From positions 2,170,001 to 2,234,000 of the forward strand of contig BQFW01000015.1 of assembly GCA_020891255.1 (NCBI GenBank): a stretch of 64,000 nucleotides of DNA. The letters run 5' to 3'. The position numbers and the translations under genes are program-made. The stretch comes from Entomortierella parvispora E1425 (Eukaryota > Fungi > Mortierellomycota). Position 1 is the first letter of the stretch, and each line of letters opens with the position of its first letter. Shown piece by piece: positions 1-7,439 of the stretch. Under the pieces are notes generated by a model. That model did no database searches. It worked only from the letters and a program-made list of their open reading frames with translations, and was not told the origin of the DNA.

Positions 1-3000
1 CAACTGACTCGTGCCAACTTGTCAAAGTCAGTCATTCCTGGATCGCCTTTAAGCAGATTAACGGTAAGGGGTGAGCATCGTGTTACCAATCCGGTGTCTT
101 AATGATCATTCAACTGAATATGTTCAATCATTTATTGTTCAGGATCCATTGGTATTTTGCCGGTGGGAACCGTTGGTCGAATTCCACAGGATTTTCATCT
201 GCTGAGCGCACATGGCTCAGGCGTTTCTGAATGGGAGTTTAGCCCTTTCGATGCTAATTGCTTGATCACTGGTGCCGAGAATGGCGAGGTAGAGAAGGAT
301 ACAATCAGGTTCAACGACGTTCTCTTGGATGATTCTATCTTCTAATGCTAATACTCTATTTTAACTTGGTCAGATCAAAGTGTGGCGGATTATTTCTCGG
401 GATGATTCTGTATCTACAGAGCTGGTTCTCACTATCAACACAGGAACTGGGAAGGGCGTGGAGTCTATTGTTCACCATCCAACGTCCAGCGAGGTAATGC
501 CGGCCGCATTTGTCAAACCTCTAACGACATGAACTTGCAAGAAAATAACTCTATTTCTTGACCGACTAGATCTTTGCATCAGCGTCGGGCAATCTGGTTC
601 AAATTTGGGATATTTCTGGTAAGGCTCAAGGGACCTCCCTCACTTCCCCAGCTTACACGTTGACCCACCCAAACACTGTCAGCAGTGTCTCCTGGAAAGC
701 GGACGGAGCGCTCCTGGCCACGACCTGTAAGGACACCCGAATTAGAGTGTTTGATCCTCGCAAGCAAGAGACCTCGGTCCAGGTACCTGCGCAATATTCT
801 GAGACGAACAAATATATTGTTAAGTTGATCTAACAGCCCTCAACTTGAATATAGGATGGTGTTGGTCATGCTGGAAACCGTTCCTCTCGAGTGATTTGGT
901 TGGGTGAGAAGGATTTGTTGGCCACAGTCGGATTTAACAAGATGCGCGAGCGAGAGGTCGCAGTGTGGAATGCAGGAGACCTAAGCAAGTCACTGGATAT
1001 GAAACGCATGGATTCTTCCTCTGGACTCACGTTGCCGCTTTACGACGAGGATACGTCCATCCTATTCATCCCATCGAGAGGAGAGTCCATCATTCGTTGG
1101 ATCGAGATTTCAGACTCTGCACCTTTTATGACGGAGGGGGCGGCATTCTCTGCACAAGGGTCTGTTAATGGTGCGGCACTGGTGCCGAAGCAGCTTATGA
1201 ATGTCATGCAGACTGAGATTGTTCGGATCCTTACTGTCACACCTACGAGTCTCTGGCCCGTTAGCGTTAATATTCCTCGAAAGGTAGGTTGTCACTCACC
1301 TGCCACGGAGCCCGCGAGTTTGAGACTAATTCATGAAGATGCTAACAGGTTTGCAATGATGACTGTAGAGTTACTTGGATTTTCACGCAGACATTTTCCC
1401 AGACACAAAGTCCACTACTCCTGGCTCAACGGCATCCGAGTGGCTCTGCGGGAACAATGGGGTTGTTCCAAGGGTATCTCTTGATCCAGGAATGGCAGGC
1501 AAGCCAATTTGGATGCAAAACGGTATTAGCGACAGACCTGTTCCTTCCAAGTTTGTTTCCTCAGCCACTACTGTTGCTCCTATTCCTAAGGTGGTGAGTC
1601 AGCCATCGACTATACCATCGGTTCTGGCGCCAGCCCCAGTTCCAGATTCAACAGCAACCACAGTTCCAGTAGCAGCAGCTCCAGCAGCCGAACCAAAGTC
1701 CGTATCCACGCCAACCGCTGTTACTACAGCCAAAGAACCTACAACGGAAGCATCAGTCACTCAGGATAAGACAAATCCAAGAACCGCAAATCCAAGCACC
1801 GCAAGCCCTGCGGTAACCACACCTACAACTTCAAAGGCACCTACCGCCACAGCGACATCTGCTACACCTGTGGCACCTTCTTTATCTAAACCAAGCTCTG
1901 CGACAACATCGCCCTTGGTTTCACGTCTGGCTACCCAGAGGAGCTCAAAGTTCCGATTCCTCTCTTTTAAACCCTACCACACGAGCTCGCATTTTGAGAA
2001 TATCCAAGGATTGAGCATCAGCACGACGCCAGAGTGCAACTTAATTGAGGTACCCCCCTCCATCCCCGATTGCTGAAACAGAGTTATGTAATCTGTTCTA
2101 TTTTGTTCATGTCAAGTCTTTTCTATTTATCGTTCATAGGTCAACTCCAAATTTTTAGCCTTGCCTCTTCATGGAACTGGAGGTCGCGTTGGTATTCTGA
2201 AAATATCAGAGCCAGGTCGTGTGGGAGCCGCGGTGCCCTATCTTGTCTGCTCATCTGATCTTTCCGGCTTCAAGTTTGATCCTTTCAATCCCAATCTTCT
2301 GGTGACCGCTTCAGATGATACCAAAATCAAAGGATGGATTCTGCCTGACGATGGTCTCGACAAGGAAAATCCTGTGACTAAGCCCAACTGGACTCTCGGT
2401 GCCCCTACCATGGAAAAGATCTCTCTTGTTCTTTTCCATCCTCGAGCCAAGGATGTGTTGCTCTCTGCTTCCATGGATCGGGATGATCCTACTATTCGCC
2501 TCTGGGACCTCAAGGCTCAGAAGGAGAAGTTGGCCATTAAAGGCCACAAGGCTACAGTATGTTGTGTTTGATGTGGAACTGGACCTGCTCTATGAGGACA
2601 AAGGAGAAGAGACCCGATTTTTTTTCTGACCTGATGTTGTTTTGTATTGCAATTTCAAAGATTTTTAGCTGCGCTTTCAATCACGACGGCACCAAAATTG
2701 TATCTGTATGCAAAGACAAGAAGGTTCGAGTCTGGAGTGCAACCACGGGCGAACTTTTGCAAGAGGGGCCAAACCATGATAGTCTTCGTTCATGCCGAGT
2801 ACTCTGGTTGGGAGATTCGGATGTAATTGCGAGTGTCGGCTTCGGAAGGTAAGAAGATTTGGGGGTTTTTTTTCTTTTTTTTTTTTTTTTTTTTTTTTTT
2901 TTGGAAAATCAATCATTTTTCAATGTAATTTACTCAAAACATTTTTTATGATCTACAGGGGAAGCCAACGTGAGATCCTGCTCTTTGATGCAAATGATTT

Positions 3001-3763
3001 GAAGCGCGGATCGATCGATTCCAAGAAGATGGACACTTCTCCAGGAATTCTTGTACCTCATTACGACGCTGACACGTCTGTGCTCGGAGTTTCGGCTCGC
3101 GGAGACCGCGTGATGCGTCACTTTGAGATCGTGCTTGAGAACAAAGACCACCTTGGACCAGGCAAAACCATGTTTGTGGATGTGGCCAGTCTGGAGCAAG
3201 GCTCGCTGCAGCAAGATGTTGCTTATCTTCCCAAGAAGTACTGTGATGTTCGGGAGGTTGAGCTAGCCAAGATGTATCGATTGACTTATAACAGTGTTGA
3301 GGTCATCCGTGTTTCCGTACCTCGTCAAAAGAAGGAGCTCTTTCAAGACGATCTCTTCCCTGATACGATCGACATGGAAACGCCATCGATTGATGCTGAC
3401 GAGTTCTTCTCTGGCACCGGTTTAGCGGTGGCTCCACAAAAAATTAGCCTTCGCCCTGCGGATATGGAGTCATGTAAGTTCTCTAGGAAAACTCAATTGA
3501 CGGTCAACGCTTGCCTATTAACGGATGTGCTTGCCCTTTTTTCCCTCATAGTGACTCAGCATAGCAGTTTGACCCCAGTGACACCACAGCAGGGCGGTAA
3601 TTCTCTGGACAAATTCCTTTTAGGCAAGCAGCAGGTCGCAGAAGACGAGCGCAAGCGCCTGGCTATGGAGCGTATGTTTGAAAGTGCCAAGGAGTCAAAG
3701 GCAGATCGCGATACCCTTGTACCTGATACTGGCATTATTGATGACGACGAATGGGATGATTAG
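1..3763 (+). CDS. CORO7: Tandem coronin (coronin-7/POD-1 class), 5' end outside window; multi-exon
   Basis: Two coronin WD40 beta-propeller units: SAHGSGVSEWEFSPF, WNAGDLSK..LDSSSGLTLPLYDEDT, IPRK..FHADIFPDT, then a second unit with FKFDPFNPNLL and VPRQKKELFQDDLFPDT. They are joined by a T/A/P-rich linker and end in acidic IIDDDEWDD (stop TAG 3761-3763). GT-AG introns seen, e.g. 64-142, 289-372, 1285-1369, 2849-2958. Confidence 0.88.
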
Positions 3764-4127
3764 ACGCCCAGCAGCAATACGTATGTAATAAAAGTAGGCC
3801 ATGGTTGGTCTGCCATGATGATCGATTGCCACCACCACCACGTGATGACTTTGCTGCGGGGTCCATTCAGCCCCTTAACAAAGGCGGGAAGTGAGGTGAC
3901 CATTGGAGCGAAGGAGTCGTCCACTCGTGTGCCCAGACTGTCCCAGGAAGGGGAAGGAAGCAGCGAAAGAAAGGGATCCATCTCTCCATCAAGCGATCCT
4001 CTTTCTCTCTTCTTATTCTCCTGAACCCCTTCTCTTCCCGTGTCCTGCTGCCCGGCCCCCTCTTCGTATTTATCCCTGCCCCTTCCTCTTTGCCATACTC
4101 TCTCAAAGACTCCCCCGATCGCTCTCA

Positions 4128-6727
4128 ATGGACAAGTCGTTGCACGTTACTGGCATCCTCATCTACCGCCACCAAAGGAACTCCACCGAGGTTTTACTCG
4201 TCAACGACTCTTTCAACCACAAGCGACACTGGACCGCGCCCAAGGGCAGGGTCATTGGCGATGAAGACGAGCTCAAGTATGTTCCCATGCCCTTTTCCTT
4301 AATTTTCCATTGACGGATGCCGTTCCACTCAGCTTTACACGCGCTCAATGGAGCATGCCGGAAAGAAGACATATGGTCTGATCAGCTCGCCGATGGGGAA
4401 GATTGCACATTAACCAGACACTAACACTTTCTTGTATGTGAATAGATGCGCTCTCCGCGAGACTTTGGAGATCACTGGACTCTCGGTCAAGGACCTGAAG
4501 GTTGAGGATGGATTCCGCGCCGAGATCAAATACCTCTCTGGAACAAAGTATGGACTGGAACAGTGTTTTCATGCACATTCACTAAAGACTGGAGGAACAT
4601 CTTTTCCTAACTGGGTTGTCATTGATTGCTACTAATTCTCTTCCTTGCAATGTCCACACTAGGCCAAAGCGTGTGGTCTATTATCTAGCAGAGTTGACGG
4701 ATAGTTCCAGAGTACTTCCTTCAGGCGAGGGCGTTCAATTCTCTTGGTGCAACTTGCAGCAGGCGACCGACAAGGCCCTCTACAGGACTATGCAGGACGT
4801 CCTCCGTATGGCTTTTACTGCGGCAGAGGCCAGTCGGGCTAAGGCATTGGCCGCAGCCCCCCAAAAGATCCACCGTAGCTCCAACAACAACAGCGGCGAC
4901 AGCCTCGAGTCCAACATGAAGAACCTCAACATTGCTCTTCCACTAGACTCTCAGCGCCAGGCCCTCAACCGCGGTTACAATGGAGCCAATAGTGGCGGAG
5001 GTGGTCAAGGCCGCGAGCGTGACCAACGATATGGAGGTGACCGTGAACACACTGGACGCCAAGGCGGCAACGGTAGGATTTTTACTTGTGAAATGAATTC
5101 AGAATTGAATGCGATCCCATCTCTTGCGGCCAGCTAACGGTCTGTTTTGCATTATTCTAGGAGGTAACCCCGCGTCCTCTCATGCGGATAACCCCAATTA
5201 CAAGACACGCCTCTGTGAGCGGTTCGAAACGGAGCAGTTCTGCCCCTACTATGCAAAGTGCACCTTTGCCCATGGTGCTGCAGAGTTGCGCCAACGTCCC
5301 GTCACTGCAGATCAGGATAAGCCCATGTCGGCCGTACAAGCATCCTATCAGAATAGAGCCAAGCGTACTGAAGCCACTGAGAACGAGTTTCTCAAGACTC
5401 GCCTATGCGAGCGCTTCATGAACGATGGGGAGTGTCCCTTCGGATCCAAATGCACTTACGCTCATGGACGTGAAGAGCTCCGCCAGCGTGCAGGTTATCA
5501 GGGCAACAATGGCGGTAATGGAGGTGGCATGAACAATGGAGGTGTGGGCGGTCAAGGACGACCCTACAACCGTGATGGTTATGCCGAGGACCGTTTTAAC
5601 AGATCGGATGCTGCAGGACAAGATCGTCCTTATCGCCCACAGCACACTTATCAGTCTACTAACTCGGGAGCTGAAGACAGATCCTTCCGTCGCCCAGAGG
5701 CGCCCTTCCGATCGACCTTTTCTGAGAACGCCCGTGAAAACCGCGATGGCCCTTATAGACCACCTCAGGCTCTCGAGCAGGAGCGTTACCGTCCTCAGCC
5801 GGATACAACCAACACCACAGGAACTTACCGTGTTCCACAGGCTCGACTTGCACCCAACCAATCCCAGGAGGACTCTTCTGTAAGCCGCTCTGTCCTCGCC
5901 CCTAGGGCCACCATTCCTTCAACTTCAACCTTGACGGCGGCTCCACCTGTTGCTTCGCCTGTGACAAACATCTCGCCTGCTACTACGCCTGTTCTTGGTA
6001 GCGAAAAGACCATGAATGGTCGTCGCCGTGTGCAAGATCTTAATGTATGGAGCCTTTATGTTTTTGATTAGCAATTTGCACCCTCTATTTGCACTGTAGA
6101 GCTAACATGTTTTATCACGGTTAATGATATTAGGACAAGCCTCGCGCCAAGGTAGTAGAGATGTCGAGTGAAGACATGGAGAAGTTTCAGCTTCGCAGAC
6201 CCGACACCCCTGTGGCTGCCAAGCCGGACTCGAAGCAGGCTCAGCGGGACCAATTGATCCAAGATCTTCAAAAGTTTTTCCAGAATGGACACCAGTTGGC
6301 AGTAGGCCAGGACAAGAAGCAGCAGCAGCAGCAACTTCAAGAAGAGATCAAGGAAGTGACGCGAGTCGAGATGCGCAACGGACTGACCAAGGCACAACTG
6401 TATTATATTTTGGTTGCCAGTTTGTTCACGGAGACGTCGATCGAAACATGGAAGAGGGTCTTGGCCGACAAGGAAAAGTTGCTGGCCAACTTTGTGCGTT
6501 CCAGCGAGGATCAGTTGACTTTGATGCGTGCTTGGGAGCAATTGTTTGTTAAGCACCGACCCAACATGATGGCCAGGGCGCCGATCGTGATGAAGGGTCT
6601 GTATGACAGCGAGTTGGTTGAGGAGGATGTGATGTTGTCTTGGTATGACTTGCCTACGACGGATGCAGAGCTCAAGAAGAAGTGCGTGGTCTTTGTAGAT
6701 TGGCTCCGTTCAGCGGAGGAGGAGTAG
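4128..6727 (+). CDS. Multidomain protein: NUDT2/Ap4A-hydrolase-like Nudix domain + 2 CCCH zinc fingers + low-complexity region + C-terminal W2 (eIF5/eIF2B-epsilon/eIF4G-type) domain, 712 aa
   Basis: Exons 4128-4276, 4446-4547, 4663-5072, 5161-6044 and 6134-6727 sum to 2139 nt in frame with canonical GT-AG sites. Motifs: HWTAPKGRVIGDEDELKCALRETLEITGL and KPKRVVYYLAEL (NUDT2-like); YKTRLC-X8-C-X5-C-X3-H and LKTRLC-X8-C-X5-C-X3-H; LYDSELVEEDVMLSWY and FVDWLRSAEEE (W2 acidic-aromatic boxes). Confidence 0.85.
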
Positions 6728-7439
6728 ATGCCGTAGTTTGTTCTTTTCAGATGTTGTTCCTCGACATTTTTCCCCTTCCGTTTTGATTGACCCTTTATCA
6801 TTATTCATTTTTATCGCGCTCTTGAACCATTGCCCTTTTTTTTTTGTTGGCGAACCCTCTCTCGTTTTTTCTGCTCACGTTGGCGAACAGAGGCGACACC
6901 ATACCGGAAATCTTTATTTGTCTACCTCGCACTCATTTTTTTTTGTATTGTACCAACAACAATGAAAGAATATTATCCAAAAAAAATGGGTGTTGGGTCG
7001 TTGGGAGGTTGGGAAGTTTGGACTTTGGATCCAACACGACACCAAGCCAGGAACGGACAAAATGAAAGGCAAAGACAGAGACAGAAACAGAGACAGGAGG
7101 ACAGCAGGAACCCAGAAAGCCGAGCAGCCTTGTTCGAGATGGGGTAAGGGACTGATTGGCCCGCGATAACTGAATTTAAAGATCCATTGGGTCAGTTTCG
7201 CCCCCCTCCACTCTTCCCAAGTCCCAACAAAAGACCAAGCGACAAGAGAAAGATCGTCGTTTGAATCGAGCCTCTGTACGTGATTCGAGACGCTTTCACC
7301 AAACATCCTTCCTAAGAAGTCCCTCTTCTTGCCCCCCAGCAAACAAAGGCAGGCGGCAAACAGGGTCCCACGTACACCCACACCCACACCCACCACACAG
7401 TCACTCTGGGCCAGTTGGCCAATGCCGTCGATGGGGAGT

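Follow-up and report, generated by a model that had tools for sequence, protein, structure and literature searches.

An eIF5-type W2 domain joined to CCCH zinc fingers and a NUDT2-like Nudix domain with a degenerate catalytic box in Entomortierella parvispora: a possible mRNA-bound adaptor for eIF2-beta

What use could a fungal cell make of a single polypeptide that combines a Nudix domain resembling hydrolases of diadenosine tetraphosphate (Ap4A), two CCCH zinc fingers and the W2 domain found at the C-terminus of the translation factor eIF5? This combination is encoded on the forward strand, at positions 4128-6727, of a 64,000-nucleotide stretch of the genome of the mortierellomycotan fungus Entomortierella parvispora E1425 (NCBI GenBank assembly GCA_020891255.1, contig BQFW01000015.1, positions 2,170,001 to 2,234,000; hereinafter the window, to which all coordinates refer). 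The initial annotation of this stretch, made without database searches, took the protein for an undescribed fusion and proposed that it is an mRNA-specific mimic of eIF5 that reads the status of Ap4A or of the cap. Here we find that one gene encodes the entire protein, that its architecture has already been catalogued, and that throughout the family the Nudix domain lacks the fourth conserved glutamate of its catalytic box and retains the positions that contact the ligand in Ap4A hydrolases. The reading that we favour, if tentatively, is that of an mRNA-bound adaptor contacting eIF2-beta, in which a non-hydrolytic, NUDT2-like module for Ap4A-type ligands or for a 5' end may modulate the rest of the protein.

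A single five-exon gene encodes the whole Nudix-CCCH-W2 protein. Its 2139-nucleotide (nt) coding sequence is assembled from exons joined at GT..AG sites (the first donor being GTATGT at 4277), contains no internal stop and yields 712 amino acids (aa) that are identical, at 712 of 712 residues (100%), to a deposited NCBI protein named 'bis(5'-nucleosidyl)-tetraphosphatase [Entomortierella parvispora]' (P0199); the orthologue from Mortierella claussenii (P0001) can be aligned with it end to end at 76% identity and is colinear over every exon junction. For the transcript we compared sequencing runs that share the species label, among which run X10, at about 90% nucleotide identity, represents a sister strain rather than the exact strain. 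A single 6042-nt contig of this run spans 4113-6729 with all five exons joined and the four introns gone. Introns 1 and 4 are bridged by jumps of 4276>4446 and 6044>6134, each at GT..AG; from intron 2, 115 nt are missing, as predicted, with the aligner's joint placed 6 nt leftward, probably on account of a Thr-Arg encoded in the relative, as in the M. claussenii protein, that matches the last six bases of the intron; and for intron 3 a net 88 nt are missing, beside 17 diverged exon bases. Since the introns, though diverged, are present in runs X6 and X7 (from the same sample as X10) and in X9, X10 behaves as the transcriptome of a sister strain. That provenance is the one point to be made for a gene-model artefact in which separate Nudix, CCCH and W2 genes were mistakenly fused, a reading to which we give next to no credence, given that one spliced contig joins all five exons, that the frame runs without interruption and collinearly with those of the orthologues and that about 90 proteins, distributed over several fungal phyla, are built in the same way; together with the identical deposited protein, the contig and this recurrence lead us to reject it. 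The one spliced 712-aa frame with three modules that the initial annotation had assembled thus stands, the transcript joining the parts rather than separating them.

The identity of the modules is equally clear, and the assignments originally made from sequence, namely a NUDT2-type Nudix domain, TTP-type CCCH fingers and an eIF5-type W2 domain, agree with the matches described below and with Pfam, where the whole protein exceeds all cut-offs: NUDIX at aa 9-125 with 44.0 bits (cut-off 21.1), zf-CCCH in two fingers with 52.6 bits (cut-off 20.5) and W2 at aa 641-712 (nt 6509-6724) with 51.8 bits (cut-off 30). When the exons are searched one by one, W2 scores 53.3 bits on exon 5 and NUDIX just 15 bits on exon 1, the latter being under-called on single exons because two introns split the domain; in an NCBIfam search, the Nudix matches all fell below threshold. 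The protein is laid out as beads on a string: the Nudix domain (aa 1-150), a disordered linker, the two fingers, a disordered region of about 200 aa rich in Arg, Pro and Gly, and the C-terminal W2 domain. The full-length AlphaFold model accordingly contains three folded units with long disordered segments between them, its predicted local distance difference test score (pLDDT) exceeding 90 up to aa 150 and dropping below 50 beyond aa 159; the disordered, basic share of the protein amounts to about 45%. No confident packing between the domains is seen in that model (predicted template modelling score, pTM, 0.40), so that a model of autoinhibition cannot be argued from it, and the loose arrangement would fit a flexible adaptor. 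Within the disordered region (5220-5790, aa 350-425) there are repeated Arg-aromatic units (GRPYN, DRPYR, DRSFR, DGPYR), and this part is basic (isoelectric point 9.9), with a composition typical of RNA-granule proteins.

Is such a protein without precedent, as was initially supposed? It is not. A survey of NUDIX proteins in 183 fungal proteomes (BMC Genomics 2025; PMC12210691) delineated a 'subfamily A' of 84 proteins, 100% of them fungal, most of which contain W2 (PF02020) and zf-CCCH (PF00642); these proteins are distant kin of human NUDT2, are highly disordered and were assigned no function beyond docking (PMC12210691). With PF00293, PF00642 and PF02020 in one chain, all over the curated cut-offs, the Entomortierella protein shares the architecture, the confinement to fungi and the distance from NUDT2, shows no structural difference from subfamily A and is a further member of this published family. 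Its architecture is therefore not new and the exact protein had been deposited; the family is catalogued and has no functional characterisation. Beyond the survey (PMC12210691), the present analysis adds that the fourth Nudix glutamate has been lost throughout the family and that, among the listed relatives, its occurrence is restricted to fungi outside Dikarya.

A word-indexed search produced 96 relatives, for which precomputed annotation gives the same set of domains. Both zf-CCCH and W2 are found in 32 of the 32 cluster representatives and NUDIX, at E no higher than 0.001, in 16 of the 32; most of the NUDIX-negative representatives seem to be gene models truncated at the N-terminus, and some members of full length, in which the box has diverged, score under the Pfam NUDIX cut-off. 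The named members come from Mortierellomycota, Mucoromycota, Glomeromycota, Chytridiomycota, Blastocladiomycota, Olpidium, Basidiobolus and Kickxellomycotina. Among the source-named relatives in the returned lists, which are not exhaustive, there is no member of Ascomycota or Basidiomycota (Dikarya), so a family that has been conserved throughout the early-diverging phyla of fungi may for this reason have escaped yeast genetics. The weakest of the 96 (P0255, CCCH-only, E 4e-18) is known by a CAMPEP/MMETSP marine transcriptome identifier only, and a fungal source is not evident for it. A Coemansia member (P0038) shares its 90%-identity cluster with quinone oxidoreductase-like proteins of 330 aa and with a protein of 824 aa, which suggests that a mis-fused model of neighbouring genes in one Coemansia assembly has drawn unrelated sequences into the cluster.

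Does the Nudix domain still hydrolyse anything? That it is a Nudix domain leaves little room for argument: when the N-terminal 150 residues of an orthologue were compared with solved structures, human NUDT2 (3u53, E 3.3e-18) and the Ap4A hydrolase of Caenorhabditis elegans (1kt9, E 1.2e-17) were the best matches, over essentially the whole length of the enzyme, with decapping enzymes far weaker, and the strands and helices of the alpha/beta/alpha fold, predicted at pLDDT >90, are arranged as in Nudix proteins. A search with the Nudix domain alone returned fragments of the same family plus one weak 138-aa Nudix protein. The box itself, however, deviates from the complete pattern GX5EX7REUXEEXGU with its four glutamates, the fourth being replaced by Ile59. 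Across the 85 members that possess both a recognisable Nudix box and a CCCH finger, this glutamate is absent without exception (85/85), the residue in its place being I, L, T, A, V or S, and 27 of them have also lost the glutamate of the 'RE' pair (N in 18, V, S, Q or A in 9), which is E55 in the present protein and, counted along the alignment, the equivalent of E58 in human NUDT2; the position corresponding to E103 of the C. elegans enzyme varies across the family alignment. The ligand-contact positions have fared better. In 21 full-length representatives, H34 is kept in 18, K39 in 20 and Y79, K86 and Y124 (Y or F) in all 21, the counterparts in the C. elegans Ap4A hydrolase being H31, K36, Y76, K83 and Y121, respectively. 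The invariant Y79 lies exactly 17 residues past the end of the box at L62; an aromatic residue 17 aa after the box stacks on the adenine and is a signature common to Nudix Ap4A hydrolases (PMC2425470).

Thus, compared with NUDT2 and the asymmetrical Ap4A hydrolases, the fungal domain shares the HW..PKG motif, the +17 tyrosine, the PK pair and the C-terminal aromatic ligand position; it differs in the box, which reads RETLEITGL instead of RETQEEAGI and has lost the fourth glutamate, and in being fused to about 560 further residues, and its catalysis is doubtful. The fourth glutamate is the most critical of the four in DCP2, in MutT and in the Ap4A hydrolase of C. elegans. Its replacement reportedly lowers the turnover number (kcat) by a factor of about 10^5 in the last two (E57Q in MutT, E56Q in the C. 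elegans enzyme), and E148Q of DCP2, at the same position of the box, is used in the literature as the standard catalytically dead mutant. A natural parallel is CFIm25 (NUDT21), which lacks the second and fourth box glutamates (Leu and Ile, respectively) and binds Ap4A with a dissociation constant of 2.4 uM without hydrolysing it (PMC2425470). CFIm25 resembles the fungal protein in placing a Nudix fold in an RNA-binding context and in the change of the fourth glutamate to Ile, but it belongs to another Nudix family (PF13869), binds its RNA (UGUA) via the Nudix fold itself and is a nuclear 3'-end processing factor devoid of CCCH and W2 domains. Because the fourth glutamate is gone, we propose that canonical hydrolysis has been lost, and because the ligand pocket of Ap4A hydrolases is kept, we read the domain as a putative binding or sensing module. 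Between a pseudo-hydrolase that binds nucleotides or 5' ends and a residually active enzyme we lean modestly towards the former, and no further than that since three of the four glutamates survive in this protein.

The competing view is that of an active, RNA-guided Nudix enzyme, which would hydrolyse Ap4A, Np4N-type caps or 5'-triphosphate RNA (PPP-RNA), with the fingers choosing the RNA and the W2 domain delivering the enzyme to initiating mRNAs. It would explain the strong full-length likeness to NUDT2, an enzyme that strips 5' phosphates off PPP-RNA (PMC8616924), and the persistence of E46, E55 and E58, and it would agree with the names given to these proteins in databases and with their treatment as hydrolases in the survey (PMC12210691). 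However, human NUDT2 becomes inactive on PPP-RNA when its E58 is changed to Ala (PMC8616924), the very position that 27 of the 85 members have abandoned, and the replacement of the fourth glutamate by a hydrophobic or small residue in every member, the variable equivalent of C. elegans E103, the non-hydrolytic CFIm25 with its similar loss and the inactive DCP2 mutant all point in the opposite direction, so that we regard an active enzyme as unlikely. The public names of the protein and of many orthologues are 'bis(5'-nucleosyl)-tetraphosphatase' or 'nudix-type motif 2' (one Rhizophagus record reads 'Cth1p'); the enzyme name is probably an over-annotation since the fourth glutamate is missing family-wide, and the label of active bis(5'-nucleosyl)-tetraphosphatases should be treated with doubt given the degeneration of the box.

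The box has not drifted in the same manner everywhere. R-N takes the place of R-E in 18 of the 85 members, among them that of Ambispora (P0012, Glomeromycota), and we suspect that the remaining R-N members are from Glomeromycota as well; chytrid and kickxellid members have R-V, R-S or R-A. In some lineages, therefore, the catalytic residues have decayed further with the fold still conserved.

What, then, could the C-terminal part of the protein contribute? By sequence, exon 5 matched best the C-terminal domain (CTD) of human eIF5 (2iu1, E 2e-7), followed by eIF2B-epsilon and eIF4G. Its AlphaFold model is confident (pLDDT 88, pTM 0.77) and consists of nine helices, and Foldseek places at the top of its list the CTD of eIF2B-epsilon (3jui, TM score 0.73 normalised to the target), the CTD of eIF5 (2iu1, 6knd, 2ful and 9f79, with 2iu1, 2ful and 9f79 at probability 1.0) and DAP5, which establishes the W2 helical-repeat fold; among the neighbours of weaker similarity are MIF4G-like repeats from the nuclear cap-binding complex. 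In a library of 1.8 billion proteins, the nearest sequences outside the family are genuine eIF5s with PF01873 plus W2. Both acidic/aromatic boxes (AA boxes), which the initial annotation had picked out as LYDSELVEEDVMLSWY and FVDWLRSAEEE, are present and align with those of human eIF5. An alignment of 31 C-terminal regions, drawn from several phyla (numbering converted to this protein), shows Y672, E679 and W685 of AA-box 1 and W705 of AA-box 2 to be invariant and L706, A709, E710 and E711 of AA-box 2 to be conserved in at least 90%. It is through these boxes that eIF5, eIF2B-epsilon and 5MP bind the lysine boxes (K-boxes) of eIF2-beta, and casein kinase 2 (CK2) sites within AA-box 2 increase the affinity (PMC12439599). 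The Entomortierella protein has an S-x-x-E motif of the CK2 type at S708, and regulation by this kinase is conceivable for the entire family because its common ending, [ST]AEEE, is an S/T-x-x-E motif.

The similarity to the CTDs of eIF5, 5MP/BZW and eIF2B-epsilon thus extends to the HEAT-like W2 fold, both AA boxes, the acidic C-terminus and the CK2-type site. Unlike eIF5 and 5MP/BZW, the fungal protein possesses neither the eIF5 GTPase-activating (GAP) domain nor the N-terminal region of 5MP, its W2 domain being joined to the fingers and the Nudix domain instead. The whole-protein Pfam search detected no N-terminal GAP domain of eIF5 (PF01873), which is present in the outgroup proteins P0040, P0041, P0049 and P0057; therefore, the protein could hold eIF2 or compete for it, without being able to act as an eIF5. 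Shortly before the W2 region (6134-6190, aa 516-535) there is a motif, (D/E)K.WMKVVEL..EE, that is conserved from chytrids to Mucorales; the present protein and its M. claussenii orthologue lack the Trp and have DKPRAKV(V/M)EM instead. The motif occupies the position at which a linker motif of eIF5 that contacts the CTD is located (PMC12439599).

Two further explanations have to be considered at this point. In one, the W2 domain has a lysine-rich partner other than eIF2-beta and the protein serves some process apart from translation initiation, for instance nuclear RNA processing or decay. Nuclear localisation was predicted for most of the new subfamilies (PMC12210691), CFIm25 sets the precedent of a nuclear RNA-binding factor with a Nudix fold, and the cap-binding complex among the weaker fold neighbours is nuclear, too; nevertheless, the best matches of sequence and fold are, without exception, W2 domains of eIF5, eIF2B-epsilon, eIF4G or DAP5, and the invariant residues are precisely those that define eIF2-beta binding, which makes this explanation rather improbable. 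In the other, the protein is a general, 5MP-like competitor of eIF5 and eIF2B for eIF2 without mRNA specificity, the fingers and the Arg/aromatic disordered regions serving mainly for placement in RNA granules. A W2 domain closest to that of eIF5 with both AA boxes is what such a competitor would need, and the extensive disorder (about 45%, basic, with DRPYR-type repeats) as well as the variable spacing of the fingers, which speaks against one fixed bipartite RNA site, are in line with it. The sequences of the fingers, with their TTP-type lead-in and aromatic positions, nonetheless rank with the best-conserved segments of the protein, and this conservation suggests specific RNA contacts over mere localisation, so that we hold a purely general competitor, likewise, to be quite unlikely.

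The adaptor that we favour depends on the fingers to provide mRNA specificity. Among solved structures, the finger region is closest in sequence to TTP (1m9o, E 3.6e-13) and TIS11d (1rgo, E 8.4e-13). Both fingers are of the CX8CX5CX3H type with a TTP-type lead-in (family consensus LYKTRLC, extended to LYKTRLCERF), the aromatic positions in CPYG and FAHG are present, and the YKTRLC lead-in and FAHG..ELR are conserved in the family. The two fingers, the YKT.LC lead-in and FAHG..ELR are shared with TTP, TIS11d, yeast Cth1/Cth2 and Zfs1, whereas the C-terminus is AA-box 2 of the W2 domain in the fungal protein and, in the TTP family, a TTP-type C-terminal tail, the place of the CNOT1-binding motif. 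The spacing differs as well. In the TTP family the fingers are separated by a fixed 18 aa; here the linker comprises 44 aa and, across the family, from 26 to 114 aa, which rules out membership in the canonical tandem-zinc-finger class. The TTP/Cth-type assignment of the initial annotation thus holds for the type of finger and fails for the tandem domain. The fingers probably bind single-stranded U/A-rich RNA, finger by finger.

From this anatomy, these homologies and their conservation, which are observed, we infer the function in its entirety, as follows. The fingers would bind single-stranded, probably U/A-rich, elements of chosen mRNAs, and the AA boxes of the W2 domain would attach to the N-terminal tail of eIF2-beta, which is rich in lysine, and possibly to other partners of the eIF5 CTD. 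The bound mRNA would be coupled to the eIF2 ternary complex or shielded from it, in competition with eIF5 and eIF2B, as in the case of 5MP/BZW. The Nudix domain, without canonical hydrolysis, would bind or sense Ap4A-like dinucleotides or the 5' polyphosphate or cap-like end of an RNA. The mRNA-specific eIF5 mimic of the initial annotation, with its reading of Ap4A or cap status, fits the pattern of conservation, and we retain it in this conditional form.

Several considerations weigh against the adaptor and deserve to be listed together. The survey treated subfamily A as enzymes, with docking that favoured Ap3A and Ap4A as substrates, and the nuclear localisation that it predicts for most new subfamilies is ill-suited to a cytoplasmic role in initiation (PMC12210691). 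Since the finger linker varies so widely, recognition of UAUUUAU in the manner of TTP cannot be assumed. The three box glutamates that survive in this protein make residual or unconventional hydrolysis possible. Finally, W2 domains bind eIF3c, eIF1, eIF1A and, in eIF4G, Mnk, in addition to eIF2-beta.

A bolder version of the scheme would be an alarmone-gated translational switch, in which the pseudo-NUDT2 domain senses either Ap4A-type dinucleotides, which aminoacyl-tRNA synthetases release as by-products, or a non-canonical 5' end, and thereby gates the capture of eIF2-beta by the W2 domain of the mRNA-tethered protein. We consider this switch decidedly improbable; if it exists, Ap4A has a direct, mRNA-specific effector in the translation initiation of early-diverging fungi. 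The role of Ap4A in eukaryotes is a long-standing question, with few known direct effectors. A natural fusion of an Ap4A-hydrolase fold, the pocket of which seems to be kept and the chemistry lost, with an mRNA-binding module and with the domain by which eIF5, eIF2B and 5MP hold eIF2 points to a testable physical link among dinucleotide signalling, mRNA selection and the start-site machinery, and makes the protein a worthwhile experimental lead. The coordinates of the features are compiled in Table 1.

Table 1. Exons and functional motifs of the Nudix-CCCH-W2 gene of E. parvispora E1425 (nucleotide positions in the window; residue numbers of the 712-aa protein)
Feature	Position	Strand	Description
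Exon 1	4128..4276	+	start codon (ATG) at 4128; encodes aa 1-49 plus 2 nt; Nudix fold, N-terminal half, with the beginning of the box
Exon 2	4446..4547	+	aa 50-83; helix of the Nudix box (RETLEITGL) and tyrosine at +17 (Y79)
Exon 3	4663..5072	+	aa 84-220; remainder of the Nudix fold, ending near aa 150 (nt 4861), followed by Gly/Asn/Ser/Arg-rich disordered linker
Exon 4	5161..6044	+	aa 221-515; two CX8CX5CX3H fingers and long Arg/Pro/Gly-rich disordered region
Exon 5	6134..6727	+	aa 516-712 plus stop; conserved lead-in helix, then all-helical W2 domain
Nudix box GRVIGDEDELKCALRETLEITGL	4245..4482	+	aa 40-62; split by intron 1 (4277-4445); fourth conserved Glu is Ile59
Zinc finger 1	5214..5273	+	C239-H258; lead-in NYKTRLC
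Zinc finger 2	5406..5465	+	C303-H322; lead-in FLKTRLC; 44 aa past finger 1
AA-box 1 LYDSELVEEDVMLSWY	6599..6646	+	aa 671-686; aligned to human eIF5 MYDADLLEEEVIISW
AA-box 2 and acidic C-terminus FVDWLRSAEEE	6692..6724	+	aa 702-712; aligned to human eIF5 FIKWLKEAEEE

When the strains under this one species label are compared, the domains prove far less diverged than the low-complexity stretches rich in Gly and Asn and the initial 17 nt of exon 4 (5508-5580 and 5073-5178), and there are small in-frame insertions and deletions, such as a CAG insertion after 5312. The upstream neighbour, at 2792-3763 on the forward strand, encodes a C-terminal WD40 repeat of the coronin type (PF16300, WD40_4, 51 bits); its open reading frame, as delimited, starts with a poly-Phe artefact of a T-run, the true 5' exons lying further upstream.

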